Position numbers and translations under genes: made by a program
The notes under the pieces: model-generated
What the model saw: the letters and a program-made list of their open reading frames with translations, nothing else
Database searches by the model: none
What the model was told of the DNA's origin: nothing
Sequence record: MT710307.1
Reading direction: 5' to 3' (one strand)
DNA length: 64,000 nt
Shown here: positions 1 to 6,186 of the stretch, piece after piece
Position numbering within the stretch: position 1 is the first letter of the stretch
How the letters are laid out: every line of letters begins with the position of its first letter

Positions 1-474
1 ATGACCACGATTGCGTACGACGGGAAAACGCTGGCGTCTGATAGCCAGACAACCCAAGACGGTATTCGCCTGTCGAACTCTGCGATGAAAATCTTTTCAG
101 CCACACATCGTGACTGGGCAGTCGAGGGGAAGCGCATTGTCGCTTTCGGCGTAGCCGGTAATCTCCACGCCGCTAACGACCTCCGCAACGCAATGGAAAC
201 GTTCGCTGGCCACAAAGCCGGTGACCCGTTTGCCAAAGGCGTGACGTTCGCGTTTATCGCCATTGCCGAAGACCACACCGTGTTTGTTGGCGGGAAGTAT
301 TCCGATGACGACCGTTCGTGGGTTGTCGAAGCACAAGCACCGGTTGCTGTTGGCAGTGGCGGTGATTTCGCCATAGGTGCCATGGCCGCAGGGGCCAAAG
401 CCGAAGACGCTGTGAGGATTGCATCGAAGTTCGATGTGAACACCAACGATTCGGTTACCTCCATCGATTGTTAG
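1..474 (+). CDS. HslV/proteasome-beta-like Ntn hydrolase (threonine peptidase)
   Basis: Begins M-T-T-I-A (Thr nucleophile after Met removal), followed by DSQ, a Lys in MKIF, and VGSGGDFAIGAM, matching HslV/beta-subunit motifs. Start lies at the window edge. Confidence 0.75.
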   Translation: MTTIAYDGKTLASDSQTTQDGIRLSNSAMKIFSATHRDWAVEGKRIVAFGVAGNLHAANDLRNAMETFAGHKAGDPFAKGVTFAFIAIAEDHTVFVGGKYSDDDRSWVVEAQAPVAVGSGGDFAIGAMAAGAKAEDAVRIASKFDVNTNDSVTSIDC

Positions 475-2559: not shown

Positions 2560-3399
2560 ATGAGAAAGGTGCTTTTCGGAATACTTGCAGCGTTGACGTT
2601 TAGCATGTCCGCCGTAGCGGCTGACGAAGTAGTCATTACCACAGGACAGCAGGGCCTGACCTATAACTCGGTCTATGGCGTTAATCTGGCCGGTGCCATC
2701 AGCGAGTTCGGTACTCGTGCACGGGTCATCCCGTCGAAGGGGTCGTTAGACAACCTCGACAAAGTTGCCGCCGGTGAAGCCCAGATTGGTTTCACGCAGG
2801 CAGACGCTTTCCAGTTCTGGCGTGCTAAGCACCCGAACGAAGCGCAGAACGTTGACATCGTCGGTCAGCTGGCCCGTGAATGTGTATGGGTCGCTGTCAA
2901 GAAAGGCGGCAAAGTCAAAGATGCGAAAGATTTAACCGATGGCGTGAAAATCGCAGTCGGTGAACCGGACTCTGGCTCATACGCCAGTTGGCAATACCTG
3001 CAACAGTTGGTGAAAGAGTATTCCAAAGCGGAAACTTACGCCAAGGGCGGTATCCGTTCGTTGTCCAAAGTGGCAACGGGTGAATACGACGCTTTCCTGT
3101 GGGTATCTGCGCCGGATAAAAGCAACAAATTCCTCGAAGCGGTCAATCAAGACAGTTCTGGTTTAGAGCTGATTGACATGAGCACATGGAACGTCAACGA
3201 CAAACTGCCTAACGGTCAGTCTGTTTACACGAAAGAAACGGCCAAGACAGACAAGACCGCGTTCTTTGGTAAGAAAGTTGATGTCCCCTGCACCACCACA
3301 CTCGTCGTGGCTAACACTGACGCTGGTGATGATCTGCTCGAAACCGTTTCTACCATCCTCCTGAAAAATAACTCACGAGTGATGGGGGACAAAAAATAA
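2560..3399 (+). CDS. TAXI-family TRAP solute-binding-like protein with signal peptide
   Basis: Signal peptide MRKVLFGILAALTFSMSAVA; SKGSLDNLDKV..GEAQIGFTQAD and KIAVGEPDSGS are TAXI-like motifs. Confidence 0.75.
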   Translation: MRKVLFGILAALTFSMSAVAADEVVITTGQQGLTYNSVYGVNLAGAISEFGTRARVIPSKGSLDNLDKVAAGEAQIGFTQADAFQFWRAKHPNEAQNVDIVGQLARECVWVAVKKGGKVKDAKDLTDGVKIAVGEPDSGSYASWQYLQQLVKEYSKAETYAKGGIRSLSKVATGEYDAFLWVSAPDKSNKFLEAVNQDSSGLELIDMSTWNVNDKLPNGQSVYTKETAKTDKTAFFGKKVDVPCTTTLVVANTDAGDDLLETVSTILLKNNSRVMGDKK

Positions 3400-3405
3400 A
3401 AATAT

Positions 3406-4020
3406 GTACTGACCCAGTGCATCTTTTCGGGCTGGGTAGGGTTGATGTCCCTACCTGCGCGGTGTTCGTTAAGGCTGGTAACGTTCGCTAAGACCTATCG
3501 CATACCCGTAAGTCGATAGCAGCCGGTTACACAAAGAACTATCCATTGCGGTAGGTAACCGACCGTTCACGATCTCATTAGGTGAGCAAATAATCTATGC
3601 AAGGACTTCTAGGATTTGTGCTCGACATGATGGGGAGCTTACGCCGCCTCATCAAGCAGTTACGAATCTGGAAGCTTGCCCATTACTGGTTTACAGGCGA
3701 ACTGGCATCTCGTGAGAGGGCCACATGCAAACTGCGTATTTACATTAGTATGTTCACTGCGGTGAGCATAGGTCAAGCACCGGAACGATAAGCCGGACAG
3801 CTACGCCTGTAAAATACAATCTGGAAAATCATAATGGGATTAAGTTCCCAGATTTGAAAAAGTGGCTGTGTGCCACTGTAGGCGCGGTACCTCATACGGC
3901 CGGTACGCCACAAAGGTAATGTGAAAGGGGTTGGTGCTTGGAGGCGCTAAGACCGGCGGATACGCTGGCTCAGAAGAAGAAGTCCATCAACCCCGTTCTC
4001 ACCTGAGTAACACCCTTTAC
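3406..4020 (+). ncRNA. candidate large structured non-coding RNA (~615 nt)
   Basis: No credible ORF; starts at the G of TATG (3403-3406); many hairpins plus long-range helices 3690-3699/3804-3813, 3927-3936/3985-3994 and 3580-3586/3998-4004. Confidence 0.65.
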
Positions 4021-4055
4021 AGCGTGTTGCTTATATATGCGAAAGCGAGGTGAAC

Positions 4056-4382
4056 ATGGGAACGTATCGTGAAGGCCCTGAAAGCACGGTGACTCACCGT
4101 AGTCATGATTACTCTGTGGATGCATTGCTGGATATAGCGGAACGTCATAGCCTCGTTCAAATTCCAGTGTCTAGAATAGAATGGATTTTAAACGAGACTA
4201 CGCTCGACGATGAGCGGGTTAAGAATGCAGATACGGATTATCCAATCATCGTGCTGCACGAAGGAAGTTTGTATATTGTATTAGACGGTGCCCATCGCCT
4301 TGCGAAGGCGGTAGCCGAAGGCAAAGACACCATCGCAGCCAAGATATTGGTGCCTGCGAATCTACCGAAGCCGGTACGATAA
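4056..4382 (+). CDS. ParB/Srx N-terminal-like domain protein
   Basis: YPIIV...IVLDGAHRLAKA is the ParB/sulfiredoxin DGxHR signature; GAGGTG RBS. Confidence 0.75.
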   Translation: MGTYREGPESTVTHRSHDYSVDALLDIAERHSLVQIPVSRIEWILNETTLDDERVKNADTDYPIIVLHEGSLYIVLDGAHRLAKAVAEGKDTIAAKILVPANLPKPVR

Positions 4383-4388
4383 AAGTCT

Positions 4389-4413
4389 AATTACAAGTTT
4401 ACACTGTATTATG
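4389..4413 (+). promoter_or_regulatory. putative promoter of the tRNA/ncRNA array (AATTAC-N15-TATG)
   Basis: AATTAC 4389-4394, TATG 4410-4413; the predicted +1 G is the first base of a long hairpin. Confidence 0.55.
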
Positions 4414-4492
4414 TCGGAAACCCGATTTGATGTTGCACAGGGCGTTACGCTGCGGCGTTTGCCGGTGTGCAGGGTTAGGTCGGGATTCTGGC
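4413..4492 (+). ncRNA. 80-nt rod-like hairpin (leader or small RNA)
   Basis: GTCGGAA/TTCTGGC, CCCGATTTGA/TTAGGTCGGG, TGCACA/TGTGCA and ACGC-TGCG-GCGT nested; many G-U pairs. Confidence 0.5.
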
Positions 4493-4500
4493 ACCTATTC

Positions 4501-4586
4501 GGGGGTGTTCCAGAGCGGGCAAATGGAGCAGACTGTAAATCTGTTGACTTCGGTCTTCGGTGGTTCAAATCCATCCACCCCCACCA
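4501..4586 (+). tRNA. trnY: tRNA-Tyr(GTA)
   Basis: GGGGGTG/CACCCCC acceptor, loop CT-GTA-AA, long variable arm, encoded CCA. Confidence 0.95.
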
Positions 4587-4739
4587 ATTACGAGAACGTC
4601 GGCCTGCGGTTGAGGATTAGTCTCCTTTACTAGCGCCGATGGGATTCCCTCCGTCTGCGGGGAGTAACGTCCGGTCAGGGCGAAGCAATCCTGACCTGAG
4701 TGTGCTGTCGACTACAGCATGCAAGCAGAACCAAACAGT

Positions 4740-4814: not shown

Positions 4815-4820
4815 CACAAC

Positions 4821-5036
4821 GGTACCTGTCACAGCAGCCCTTGGGCTTACGCGATGATGACTGGCCGCCCATTTCCGGGTAACACATTCCTGCCAGCGTG
4901 CTATTGCCGCGAAGGTTTGTCCCCGGTATCGTGCGTTATTCGGGTCTACCCACGGTCTGCGGACGGTGCGCTGATGTCTCGATATACGCCATAGAGCAGC
5001 CTTGAGAACTCCGTGAGATTCGGAGAGGTACCACCC
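4821..5036 (+). ncRNA. tRNA-ended RNA with a ~180-nt internal body
   Basis: GGTACCT (4821-4827) pairs with AGGTACC (5026-5032), followed by ACC; T-arm-like CTCCG-TGAGATT-CGGAG (5009-5025). Confidence 0.55.
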
Positions 5037-5113
5037 ATTCTTGTGTTTCCTTATCCTGAAGACATTCTTAAGACAAATCTATTTTATGGTCGAGGAAGCA
5101 CAGAACCCATTTT

Positions 5114-5452: not shown

Positions 5453-5458
5453 CATTGC

Positions 5459-5561
5459 GCCGGTGTAAGGAAGTGGCCAAACCTAAGTAGGTCGTGAGGT
5501 AAAAGCTCACCACTGAACACCCTAAGGGTTCCTGAGGTTCGAGTCCTCAGTACCGGCACCA
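5459..5561 (+). ncRNA. tRNA-like RNA (Leu-type body) with an elongated anticodon arm
   Basis: GCCGGTG/TACCGGC acceptor, A73, CCA, TTCGAGT T-loop, long variable arm; anticodon loop replaced by a 20-nt bulged hairpin. Confidence 0.7.
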
Positions 5562-5566
5562 TGTTC

Positions 5567-5734
5567 TCTTGCTGTGGGAAATAGAAGCGAACGTAGAAAC
5601 GCCGGTTAGCTCAAAGCTTAGAGCGTCTTATCTTCGGATGAGAAGGTTGGGGGCGCAACCCGAAATCCCTATCGGCAACGGCCTGCTTGTCAGGATTAGA
5701 AACATCTACGTGGATGGGTACTTCTACAGCAAGA
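5567..5734 (+). ncRNA. nested-helix RNA containing a tRNA-like domain capped by UUCG
   Basis: 13-bp outer helix 5567-5579/5722-5734; inner ACGTAGA/TCTACGT; tRNA-like core 5601-5677 with a GCTC/GAGC D-stem. Confidence 0.55.
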
Positions 5735-5941
5735 ACAAAACAGTGGGAGCATTGTCCACAGCGACACCGGCAAAGGTTTCGGCCTTGCGGGTTGGGCGGA
5801 AGCCCGATGTTCCCCCGAACGCTGGCCTTCTGGCCAATACAGTGAAAGCTTACCCTTGCCGTTGATCACCTCTTCTGCTGCTGCCAACACACTGTATAGC
5901 TGGAATCAGTCCTGCCTTAAATGGCAAGCGTTCACCCTTTC

Positions 5942-6019
5942 GGTTCCCCAAGGCGGCTTGGGAAGTTACCTTCTGGCTCTATTAGGTAACGGTGTGGTTC
6001 AACTCCACGGGAATCACCA
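5942..6019 (+). ncRNA. atypical tRNA-like RNA with a 12-nt anticodon-position loop
   Basis: GGTTCCC/GGGAATC acceptor, A73, CCA, GTGG-TTCAACT-CCAC T-arm, GTTACCT/AGGTAAC stem with a 12-nt loop. Confidence 0.65.
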
Positions 6020-6025
6020 AACAAT

Positions 6026-6102
6026 GGCTCCGTAGCTCAGTTGGTAGAGCCCACTTCCCCGGCGGAAGTTAGGCGTCACAGGTTCGAGTCCTGTCGGAGC
6101 AA
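6026..6102 (+). pseudogene. tRNA-like element with a non-canonical anticodon loop, no encoded CCA
   Basis: Canonical D-arm (AGCTCAGTTGGTAGAGC) and T-arm (ACAGG-TTCGAGT-CCTGT); ACTTCC-CCGGC-GGAAGT lacks U33 and purine 37. Confidence 0.65.
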
Positions 6103-6103
6103 G

Positions 6104-6175
6104 AGCACTGCTGTTAAGTTGGTTAACACCCGACTCATAATCGGATATTCGCACGTTCGATTCGTGCCAGTGCTC
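6104..6175 (+). tRNA. tRNA-Met/Ile2(CAT), atypical
   Basis: CCGA-CTCATAA-TCGG anticodon arm, GCACG-TTCGATT-CGTGC T-arm; acceptor extendable to 8 bp (G6103-C6175); CCA not encoded. Confidence 0.8.
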
Positions 6176-6186
6176 GCCCTTATTTA

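Follow-up and report, generated by a model that had tools for sequence, protein, structure and literature searches.

In E. coli, the tyrT operon yields a structured RNA, RtT/Tpr, that is processed from a transfer RNA (tRNA) transcript, that of tRNA-Tyr, and the same region also encodes a small basic peptide. SgrS/SgrT and RNAIII/hld are bacterial dual-function RNAs, which are coding as well as regulatory. The GOLLD and ROOL RNAs are several hundred nucleotides (nt) long, have many covarying helices, are borne by phages and typically lie beside tRNA genes, with no function assigned to them; by cryo-electron microscopy both form cages (bioRxiv 10.1101/2024.12.08.627333). Here we describe an element of ~570 nt in three parts on the plus strand of Salmonella phage pSal-SNUABM-04 (MT710307.1, 239.6 kb). 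It occupies positions 3433-4001 of the window, by which we mean the whole 64,000-nt stretch that was analysed and whose coordinates are those of the record, and it stands at the head of the tRNA cluster of this jumbo phage.

We found that window positions 3433-4001 hold a real, ornate and strongly conserved structured RNA of the plus strand beside the tRNA array. A first-pass annotation, made from the letters of the sequence, had proposed an ornate non-coding RNA (ncRNA) of ~615 nt at this place; the RNA is indeed structured and belongs to no Rfam family, but it measures ~570 nt, is modular and carries a conserved open reading frame (ORF). Its conservation, its fold, its strand, its modular build and the selection acting on its ORF are all established by comparison of homologs. 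The element is probably a composite RNA with two functions, in which an older autonomous ncRNA module, a translated micro-ORF and a clade-specific, ultra-conserved 3' domain are combined at the head of the tRNA array.

When scanned with cmscan against Rfam 15, the element matches no family at gathering score over the window, and over 3300-4500 none at E <= 10, bar two chance hits, one to the L17 leader (E = 4) and one to mir-9449 (E ~1-7), neither of which comes near gathering score. The families without a match include GOLLD, ROOL, OLE, HEARO, raiA, RNase P, transfer-messenger RNA (tmRNA), group I/II introns, riboswitches and ribozymes; the first-pass annotation had likewise failed to place the RNA in GOLLD or ROOL, and neither appears even at E <= 10. 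ARAGORN reports no tmRNA or hidden tRNA in the region, and literature searches returned no description of this RNA. Like GOLLD and ROOL, the element is several hundred nt long, has many covarying helices and no assigned function, and is phage-borne and adjacent to tRNAs, lying upstream of the tRNA array in all four genera that carry it. Unlike them, it has a conserved and apparently translated ORF, is modular, and occurs in Gram-negative nucleus-forming jumbo phages. The likeness to RtT/Tpr is one of locus organisation only, namely a link to tRNA-Tyr, a structured RNA plausibly freed by tRNA processing and a small ORF, whereas Rfam gives no RtT match and the ~570 nt in three domains differ from repeats of ~170 nt. 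As in SgrS/SgrT and RNAIII/hld, conserved RNA structure is combined with a short ORF, but here the ORF overlaps covarying helices and its stop lies in a hairpin loop, there is no known base-pairing target, and the RNA is much larger. The arrangement of structured 5' and 3' parts around an internal short frame, with tRNAs nearby, recalls tmRNA; however, the ends do not form a tRNA-like acceptor/T-arm pairing, 5'-3' pairing is unconserved, and the ORF has an AUG, a Shine-Dalgarno (SD)-like motif and 55-69 codons. The C-terminus of the peptide reads QAPAH, QAPER or RPAPDC, unlike the tmRNA degradation tag.

A conserved RNA of the plus strand

We observe the region in 64 phage records (blastn), and an nhmmer profile search finds homology over ~3431-4007 in 18/18 fetched loci from Machinavirus, Erskinevirus, Wellingtonvirus and Seoulvirus. 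Four further diverged homologs, recovered by collection scans, are IMG/VR contigs. Diverged Machinavirus are ~69% identical across the entire unit, and Seoulvirus reaches ~79% at window 3774-3999; in phiEaH2 and Stratton, 65 nt (3928-3992) are conserved at 97% identity (blastn). A search with the loose DNA motif ATGGGATTNRGTTCC gave ~90 chance loci, which nhmmer threw out. The genus Machinavirus, to which pSal-SNUABM-04 belongs, and the related genus Seoulvirus are both placed in Chimalliviridae, the nucleus-forming phages (NCBI taxonomy), and for Asesino, which also carries the element, nucleus formation has been shown by experiment (PMC11724907).

RNAalifold, run on MAFFT alignments, returned many compensatory pairs, after which the structure was curated, a covariance model built and the homologs realigned. 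Counts for the ORF and the central domain refer to 21 non-redundant homologs and those for the 5' domain to 29 distinct members; as controls, sequences were shuffled 500 times and pairing partners were slid by 1-3 columns. No shuffle matched the observed percentage of paired cells or the covariation score in either case (0/500 in each test), and the slid controls were 33-46% paired, compared with 95-96% for the real structure. The first-pass annotation had suggested looking for covariation in homologs and for a folding energy better than that of shuffled sequence, and the covariation is found, beyond both kinds of control, in the 5' and the 3' domain. G·U pairs outnumber A·C mismatches by 60 to 2 in the 5' domain and by 51 to 8 in the 3' domain (111 to 10 combined), and therefore the RNA of the plus strand, rather than the DNA or a minus-strand RNA, is what selection acts on; a DNA-level element was rejected on this asymmetry. 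Folding energy gave a mixed answer. The whole stretch folds better than its shuffles on the plus strand (z = -3.5), but the minus strand lies lower (z = -4.4), and by domain the 5' part alone reaches only z = -0.3 and the 3' part z = -2.2. The minimum-free-energy structure of the 5' domain also misses two helices that covariation proves. Because z fails to separate the strands and is uninformative for the 5' domain, we take covariation, and not folding energy, as diagnostic.

The flagged stretch is flanked by a TAXI/TRAP solute-receptor-like gene on its 5' side, which ends at 3399 with its own stop, and by a ParB-like gene on its 3' side, and its sole record annotation is a 'hypothetical protein' at 3597-3791. 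Downstream of the ParB-like gene come tRNA-Tyr(GTA) (4501..4586, plus strand; called by ARAGORN and Rfam), which is the first gene of the array and the constant neighbour of the element, and eight further tRNAs. In all lineages the element lies upstream of the array on the same strand, and tRNA-Tyr is the first or second tRNA downstream of it.

Three domains and a small reading frame

The 5' domain (3433..3584, ~150 nt), which like all features below lies on the plus strand unless stated otherwise, consists of a hairpin and a three-way junction, followed by a conserved tail, CUYAUU.GRU. Hairpin H1 (3433-3441/3449-3457) has the loop YUGRURU, and helix P1 (3459-3463/3562-3566) closes the junction, inside which an optional variable hairpin (3467-3483), H2 (3495-3500/3514-3519, with a 13-nt loop G..CC..UAA..C) and the two-part H3 (3524-3530/3555-3561 and 3539-3543/3550-3554, with the invariant bulge CACAAAG.AC) are found. 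Three helices that had been proposed in the first-pass annotation, GGTAGGG/CCCTACC, CTATCG/CGATAG and CGGTTAC/GTAACCG, correspond to H1, H2 and the outer part of H3, and each covaries. Across the 29 members 95.4% of cells are paired and 25/31 pairs show double changes; covariation is scored at 0.706, compared with 0.203 in shuffled alignments (0/500 reach it) and <0.10 in slid ones. The covariance model R1, built here on H1, the P1-closed junction, an invariant GAC, the H2 loop, an AGCC and the H3 bulge, scores 143 bits at window 3433-3584, which is its single copy in the window. Its 29 members, comprising fused phage copies, stand-alone phage copies and megaplasmid copies, score 57-143 bits. 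We assign the 5' module to a family of autonomous structured ncRNAs that had not been catalogued before.

The 3' domain (~3816-4001, ~190 nt) has a nearly invariant core and stems that covary, with 96.2% of cells paired, double changes in 15/37 pairs and an observed score that 0/500 shuffles reach. It opens with the single-stranded motif ACAAUCUG (3816..3823), invariant in the alignments, which in Erskinevirus and Wellingtonvirus pairs with the ORF-internal CAGGNUGUGGG. The following hairpin, UGGGA-UURAGU-UCCCA (3835..3850), is invariant and 100% paired, and gives no covariation evidence because it has almost no variation; the next, AGUGGC-UGUGU-GCCACU (3861..3877), is 97% paired with double changes in 4/6 pairs. 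Then comes a swappable module, GGCGCGGUACCUCAUACGGCCGGUACGCC (3881..3909, 29 nt), one of three types in the alignments: at homologous positions in loci L002-L034 there is a variable hairpin module of ~30-45 nt that belongs to one of three unrelated sequence types. The type in pSal-SNUABM-04 is common to Asesino and Seoulvirus and not to its closest relatives, and since the distribution cuts across phage phylogeny, it suggests recombinational exchange of RNA modules. A match of this module to the L17 leader (E = 4) was rejected as chance. The 3' core (3916..4001) is built on a long helix (3924-3939/3982-3998, including GGGGUUGGUG/CAUCAACCCC) that encloses a hairpin at 3947-3973 (CCGGCG-GAUA-CGCUGG) and the purine run AGAAGAAGAAGUCC. 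The pairing GGGGTTGGTG/CATCAACCCC (3927-3936/3985-3994), which had been proposed from the sequence, closes this core and covaries. Model R2, made for the core, scores 107 bits at 3916-4001 and finds a single copy in the window.

Between these two lies a central domain (3690..3813) whose fold is lineage-specific. In this phage it is closed by UUUACAGGCG/CGCCUGUAAA (3690-3699/3804-3813) and encloses hairpins at 3708-3719 and 3749-3770. Here the first-pass annotation was right for part of the family. Its helix TTTACAGGCG/CGCCTGTAAA (3690/3804) is intact, but invariant, in 14/21 sequences (Machinavirus, Seoulvirus) and broken in 7/21; in Erskinevirus and Wellingtonvirus the ORF-internal CAGGNUGUGGG pairs with CCCACAAUCUG instead. 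Its GNRA hairpin CUC-GUGA-GAG (3708-3719) covaries (CG to UA) in Machinavirus and Seoulvirus, whereas Erskinevirus and Wellingtonvirus have their own covarying GNRA hairpins in the second half of the ORF; such lineage-specific hairpins include AGGAC-GAGA-GUCCU, AGGAC-GCAA-GUCCU and AGGGC-GCAA-GCCCU. Its pairing ATGTTCAC/GTGAGCAT (3750-3769) is present, but only in the closest relatives. One hairpin is universal, AGC-A-CCGG / CCG-N4-GCU (3776..3802), which is 100% paired in the 21 sequences, has one pair that covaries from GC to AU in 3 of them, and holds the UAA stop of the ORF in its loop.

This ORF (3597..3791; 64 amino acids (aa), QOC54468.1, phrog_26199) ends in TAA at 3789-3791, and a putative SD-like motif read from the sequence, AGGUGAG (3580..3586), lies 10 nt upstream of its AUG, with purine-rich equivalents in other lineages (alignment). 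The stretch had been described as without a credible ORF, which the comparison contradicts: all 21/21 homologs keep an ATG-initiated frame of 55-69 codons with a common TAA and indels in multiples of 3, and the N-terminal half is under purifying selection. There are 0 stops in this frame in 21/21 homologs, whereas the other five frames each have 1-7 stops in every sequence and 48-72 in total. An open frame could by itself have arisen by chance, since elsewhere in the element other frames also run for 40-90 codons without a stop. In within-lineage comparisons the ratio of nonsynonymous to synonymous differences (pN/pS) is 0.45 for the whole ORF, against 0.84 and 1.36 in the other two frames. 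The two halves behave differently. For codons 1-34 (3597-3698), which encode the predicted helical peptide, pN/pS is 0.37 against controls of 0.85 and 1.42, pS is 0.39, and differences at the three codon positions stand at 224:146:325; these numbers are a coding signature and indicate purifying selection at the protein level. For codons 35-64 (3699-3788), which overlap structured RNA, pN/pS is 0.80 against controls of 0.78 and 1.37 and overall divergence is low, and this half is therefore constrained as RNA. The coding signal is thus seen in the N-terminal half, with the C-terminal half showing openness only.

AlphaFold2 predicts one long helix over residues 2-33 (predicted local distance difference test ~80-87) with a low-confidence tail. 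The sequence of the peptide is basic and amphipathic, lacks any hydrophobic segment long enough to span a membrane, and matches nothing in Pfam. The ORF of the window matches phrog_26199, a family with no function in its name, over its full length (E = 3e-45), the ORFs of other lineages matching more weakly; that family was itself built from annotated copies of this same ORF.

Two long-range pairings that had been proposed, and that would tie the RNA into a single fold, do not hold across the family. For AGGTGAG/CTCACCT (3580/3998) only 54% of cells are paired, with support in the closest relatives alone, where the SD region (3578-3586) can pair with the 3' tail (3998-4006; UUAGGUGAG/CUCACCUGA) and a consistent U·G to U-A change is seen. 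The alignment shows GGTGTT/AACACC (3461/4009) disrupted even in pEa_SNUABM_10 and _6.

Stand-alone relatives, transcript ends and neighbouring genes

The 5' domain also exists by itself. SA002, an unclassified 288-kb phage, carries it alone (E = 7e-23), starting 24 nt after tRNA-Tyr; P1 has acquired new compensatory changes there, and nothing corresponds to the ORF. On contig L133 (287 kb, viral) the domain is followed by ~100 nt and then a textbook intrinsic terminator, without an ORF, and contigs L166 and L178 hold the domain alone as well. Distant copies (57-68 bits, E ~1e-11 to 1e-14) were found on the 972-kb Pseudomonas megaplasmid pMPPla107 and on two related metagenome contigs, L173 and L174. 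In these three places the RNA forms a gene of its own, ~330 nt long and equipped with a sigma-70 promoter (TTGACA, 16-17 nt, TAGGAT or TAAGAT) and a perfect intrinsic terminator. The megaplasmid copy is an unannotated small RNA gene (L179 4999-5318, equal to NZ_CP031226.1 ~203617-203936) made up of the R1 homolog, a ~100-nt tail and the terminator, and the unannotated copies at L173 ~1340-1680 and L174 ~270-600 have the same layout; on pMPPla107 and L174 the next gene sits on the opposite strand. Such an arrangement speaks against a role of the 5' domain as a mere leader of the ORF. Rfam holds no family for these stand-alone relatives, the pMPPla107-type RNA included, and blastn of the megaplasmid-type RNA gave no match in E. 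coli genomes or phages. Model R2 matches none of the stand-alone versions. Only in the four Chimalliviridae genera, therefore, have the ORF and the 3' domain been added. Taken together, the element is modular and not one indivisible fold, and its 3' core is restricted to those four genera.

Some copies and candidates call for separate mention. In a genome-collection scan for the 5' domain, 32/32 matches were rejected by R1, and the hits on metagenome contigs L169 and L171 were chance matches. On L178 (minus strand, ~380-830) the domain is followed by TATATG and then directly by an unrelated 55-aa ORF that stops at CAGTAAGCCGGA, with no homology to the element beyond the 5' domain. The stop motif of that ORF, TAAGCCGG, is the motif that holds the stop of the ORF in the window, which could be a coincidence or a remnant of shared architecture. 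On L133, upstream of the 5' domain, positions 780-860 align to the tRNA-Tyr of SA002 (L128 2857-2942); ARAGORN no longer calls a tRNA there, and the segment looks like a decayed tRNA-Tyr.

As to transcript ends, late promoters of phage phiKZ are TATG motifs with +1 at the G, read by the non-virion RNA polymerase (PMC4666361). A TATG is present at 3403..3406, where transcription had been proposed to begin, and this putative start is unconserved in pEa_SNUABM_6 and other lineages. The adjoining hairpin GUACUG/CAGUGC with a U-run (3407..3428) lies outside the conserved core, which starts at 3433, and may either weakly terminate the TAXI-like gene upstream or form a hairpin at the 5' end; its pairing (GTACTG/CAGTGC, 3407-3421) had been pointed out before and does form, also as GUACUG/CAGUAC in pEa6, but only in the closest relatives. 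A second promoter-like motif of the TATG type, TATATATGC (4032..4040), has a single match in the window, and a promoter function is suggested by analogy with phiKZ (PMC4666361). It is conserved in all Machinavirus amid diverged flanks, just 3' of the element and before the ParB-like gene or the tRNA array.

Turning to the neighbouring genes, the ParB-like gene (4056..4382; annotation) is no part of the element and is confined to the closest relatives. Most lineages do not have it, and in pEa_4, pEa_9, Caitlin and ChrisDB no such gene intervenes between the element and tRNA-Tyr; a ParB-linked function of the element was rejected on this ground. The gene encodes a ParB/Spo0J-N-terminal-domain protein of 109 aa and has its own TATATATG motif and SD (window 4032-4382), an insertion in the closest relatives only; in other Machinavirus the same TATATATG motif stands directly 5' of the tRNA array, consistent with a phage promoter for the tRNAs. 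Machinavirus, Erskinevirus and Wellingtonvirus have the TAXI-family homolog of TRAP-transporter solute-binding proteins (window 2560-3399; 'putative immunogenic protein' in Machina), an unusual phage gene that ChrisDB has lost and Seoulvirus does not carry. Further upstream, an HslV/proteasome-like protease gene and a TerB-family gene (window 1-474 and 1861-2307) are interleaved with tRNA-Trp (1256) and tRNA-Cys (1647). Within the array, ARAGORN and Rfam call a tRNA-Pro(CGG) at 6025-6103 that has no annotation in the GenBank record, and the tRNA at 6103-6178 (anticodon CAT), given as Met by ARAGORN and as tRNA-Ile in the record, may be a lysidine-type tRNA-Ile2. Gaps in the array of 150-570 nt (4587-4739, 4815-5113 and 5453-6024) contain weak ORFs only, such as 5569-5865 (TTG start, 98 aa; 'hypothetical' in Machina), and could hold ncRNAs or degenerate tRNAs.

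Competing readings and biological meaning

We weighed the composite RNA against four other explanations. An ordinary messenger RNA (mRNA) for a small protein, with the 5' domain as a cis-regulatory leader (riboswitch-like or a translational operator) and the 3' domain as a stabiliser or terminator, is in our judgement unlikely. A P1-closed three-way junction just upstream of an SD is typical riboswitch geometry, and the 5' domain shows it, ending 12 nt before the AUG with a conserved tail that overlaps the SD-like AGGUGAG. The L178 domain is likewise followed directly by an ORF, and the closest relatives have a 3' tail able to base-pair with the SD region. Yet a leader would hardly be expected as the stand-alone gene with promoter and terminator that it is on pMPPla107 and L173/L174, with the next gene on the opposite strand on pMPPla107 and L174, or as the L133 copy, which runs into a terminator and lacks an ORF. 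Rfam offers no riboswitch or leader that fits, and nothing in the locus is conserved as well as the 3' core, which in this respect far exceeds the protein and would be unusual for a 3' untranslated region.

A purely non-coding large ornate RNA like GOLLD/ROOL, in which the open frame is a by-product of RNA constraints and is never translated, appears quite unlikely to us, although it accounts well for the C-terminal half of the ORF, where pN/pS equals the control (0.80), covarying GNRA hairpins abound and the stop codon lies inside a structural loop motif. The existence of the 5' domain without an ORF in SA002, L133 and pMPPla107 fits it too, as do the 40-90-codon stop-free runs in other frames elsewhere in the element. 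It does not sit well with a frame that is the only one open, in 21/21 sequences, against 48-72 stops per other frame, nor with an N-terminal half that has no predicted RNA structure and yet shows a pN/pS of 0.37, a pS of 0.39 and an excess of third-position differences. The ATG and a purine-rich SD-like motif are kept, indels come in threes, and an amphipathic helix is predicted, all of which point away from a by-product.

We regard as very improbable a hok/sok-like locus in the style of type I toxin-antitoxin systems, where the folded mRNA of a toxic peptide would be silenced by 5'-3' fold-back and activated by 3' processing. A small ORF does lie within very structured RNA, and the SD region pairs with the 3' tail (3578-3586/3998-4006) in the closest relatives, but the fold-back is unconserved outside one subclade (54% paired), the amphipathic, basic peptide has no transmembrane-length hydrophobic segment, no antisense promoter or RNA is evident (sigma-70 matches being at chance level only), and the G·U bias puts structure on the plus strand only. 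There is next to no chance of a diverged known RNA class missed by Rfam (intron, RNase P, tmRNA or tRNA pseudogene) or of a DNA element (origin, pac or ParB site), for although tRNAs and, in this phage, a ParB-like gene adjoin, the internal ORF between structured ends is superficially tmRNA-like and the position is near the conventional start of these genome records, Rfam gives none at E <= 10 bar the two chance hits, ARAGORN calls no tmRNA or tRNA, and an ORF with an AUG and 55-69 codons is unlike the tmRNA tag. An intron was rejected also for having no flanking exons, the upstream gene ending at 3399 with its own stop.

For the composite RNA, we infer expression as one transcript, processing, translation and action in trans. 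The RNA would accumulate as a stable folded molecule whose ends are set, at least partly, by tRNA-processing enzymes; the idea is suggested by the conserved 3' core, which ends 8-10 nt before tRNA-Gly in Asesino and Stratton, and by the 5' domain of SA002 with its start 24 nt after tRNA-Tyr. A ribosome would make the amphipathic helical peptide (~33 codons), read ~30 codons more through the RNA-constrained stretch and stop at the UAA held in the loop of the universal hairpin. Translation of the ORF would in this way supply a small helical peptide and transiently unfold the central domain, so that peptide synthesis would be coupled to RNA remodelling, and the RNA itself may work in trans, either as a scaffold for a partner, protein or RNA, or as its decoy.

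Several points weigh against the composite RNA. Action in trans is conjectural, and the peptide is so far a predicted one. Its protein family is very small, a profile search of a large protein database yielding only 6 clusters, all from these phages, and the pairwise dN/dS comparisons (nonsynonymous against synonymous change) are not phylogenetically independent. Helices that would link the domains are lineage-specific or unsupported. Another TATG-type motif lies at the ORF start in the pEa_4 clade, and from it the 3' two-thirds could be transcribed separately. The transcript, its ends and the status of the three parts as one molecule remain putative, since literature searches found no transcriptome of these phages. 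Finally, the stand-alone 5' domains on L133, L166, L178, L173 and L174 have no nearby tRNA, and tRNA-linked processing therefore cannot be general for the family.

Beyond the composite RNA itself, we tentatively consider it possible that the element represents a new large phage RNA class, in which an ncRNA module, a self-encoded helical micro-protein and an ultra-conserved RNA domain make up a self-contained ribonucleoprotein (RNP) or a translation-gated RNA machine. Large structured RNAs of unassigned function are rare, and GOLLD, ROOL, OLE and raiA each opened new biology; to our knowledge, no RNA of that kind is known in nucleus-forming jumbo phages. Current annotations give the region as a 'hypothetical protein' or not at all. 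The comparative support is unusually strong, and the carriers SPN3US, Asesino and Machina are well-studied and culturable, so that direct testing is possible. Seldom do a reading frame and a conserved RNA fold share the same nucleotides as clearly as here, where one half evolves as protein and the other half as RNA. Through the 5' module, jumbo phages are linked to megaplasmids of ~1 Mb, which points to a function useful for very large mobile replicons generally. If the proposed class is real, nucleus-forming phages would deploy an RNP or RNA machine alongside their tRNAs, and its roles may include control of tRNAs or translation, and counter-defence.

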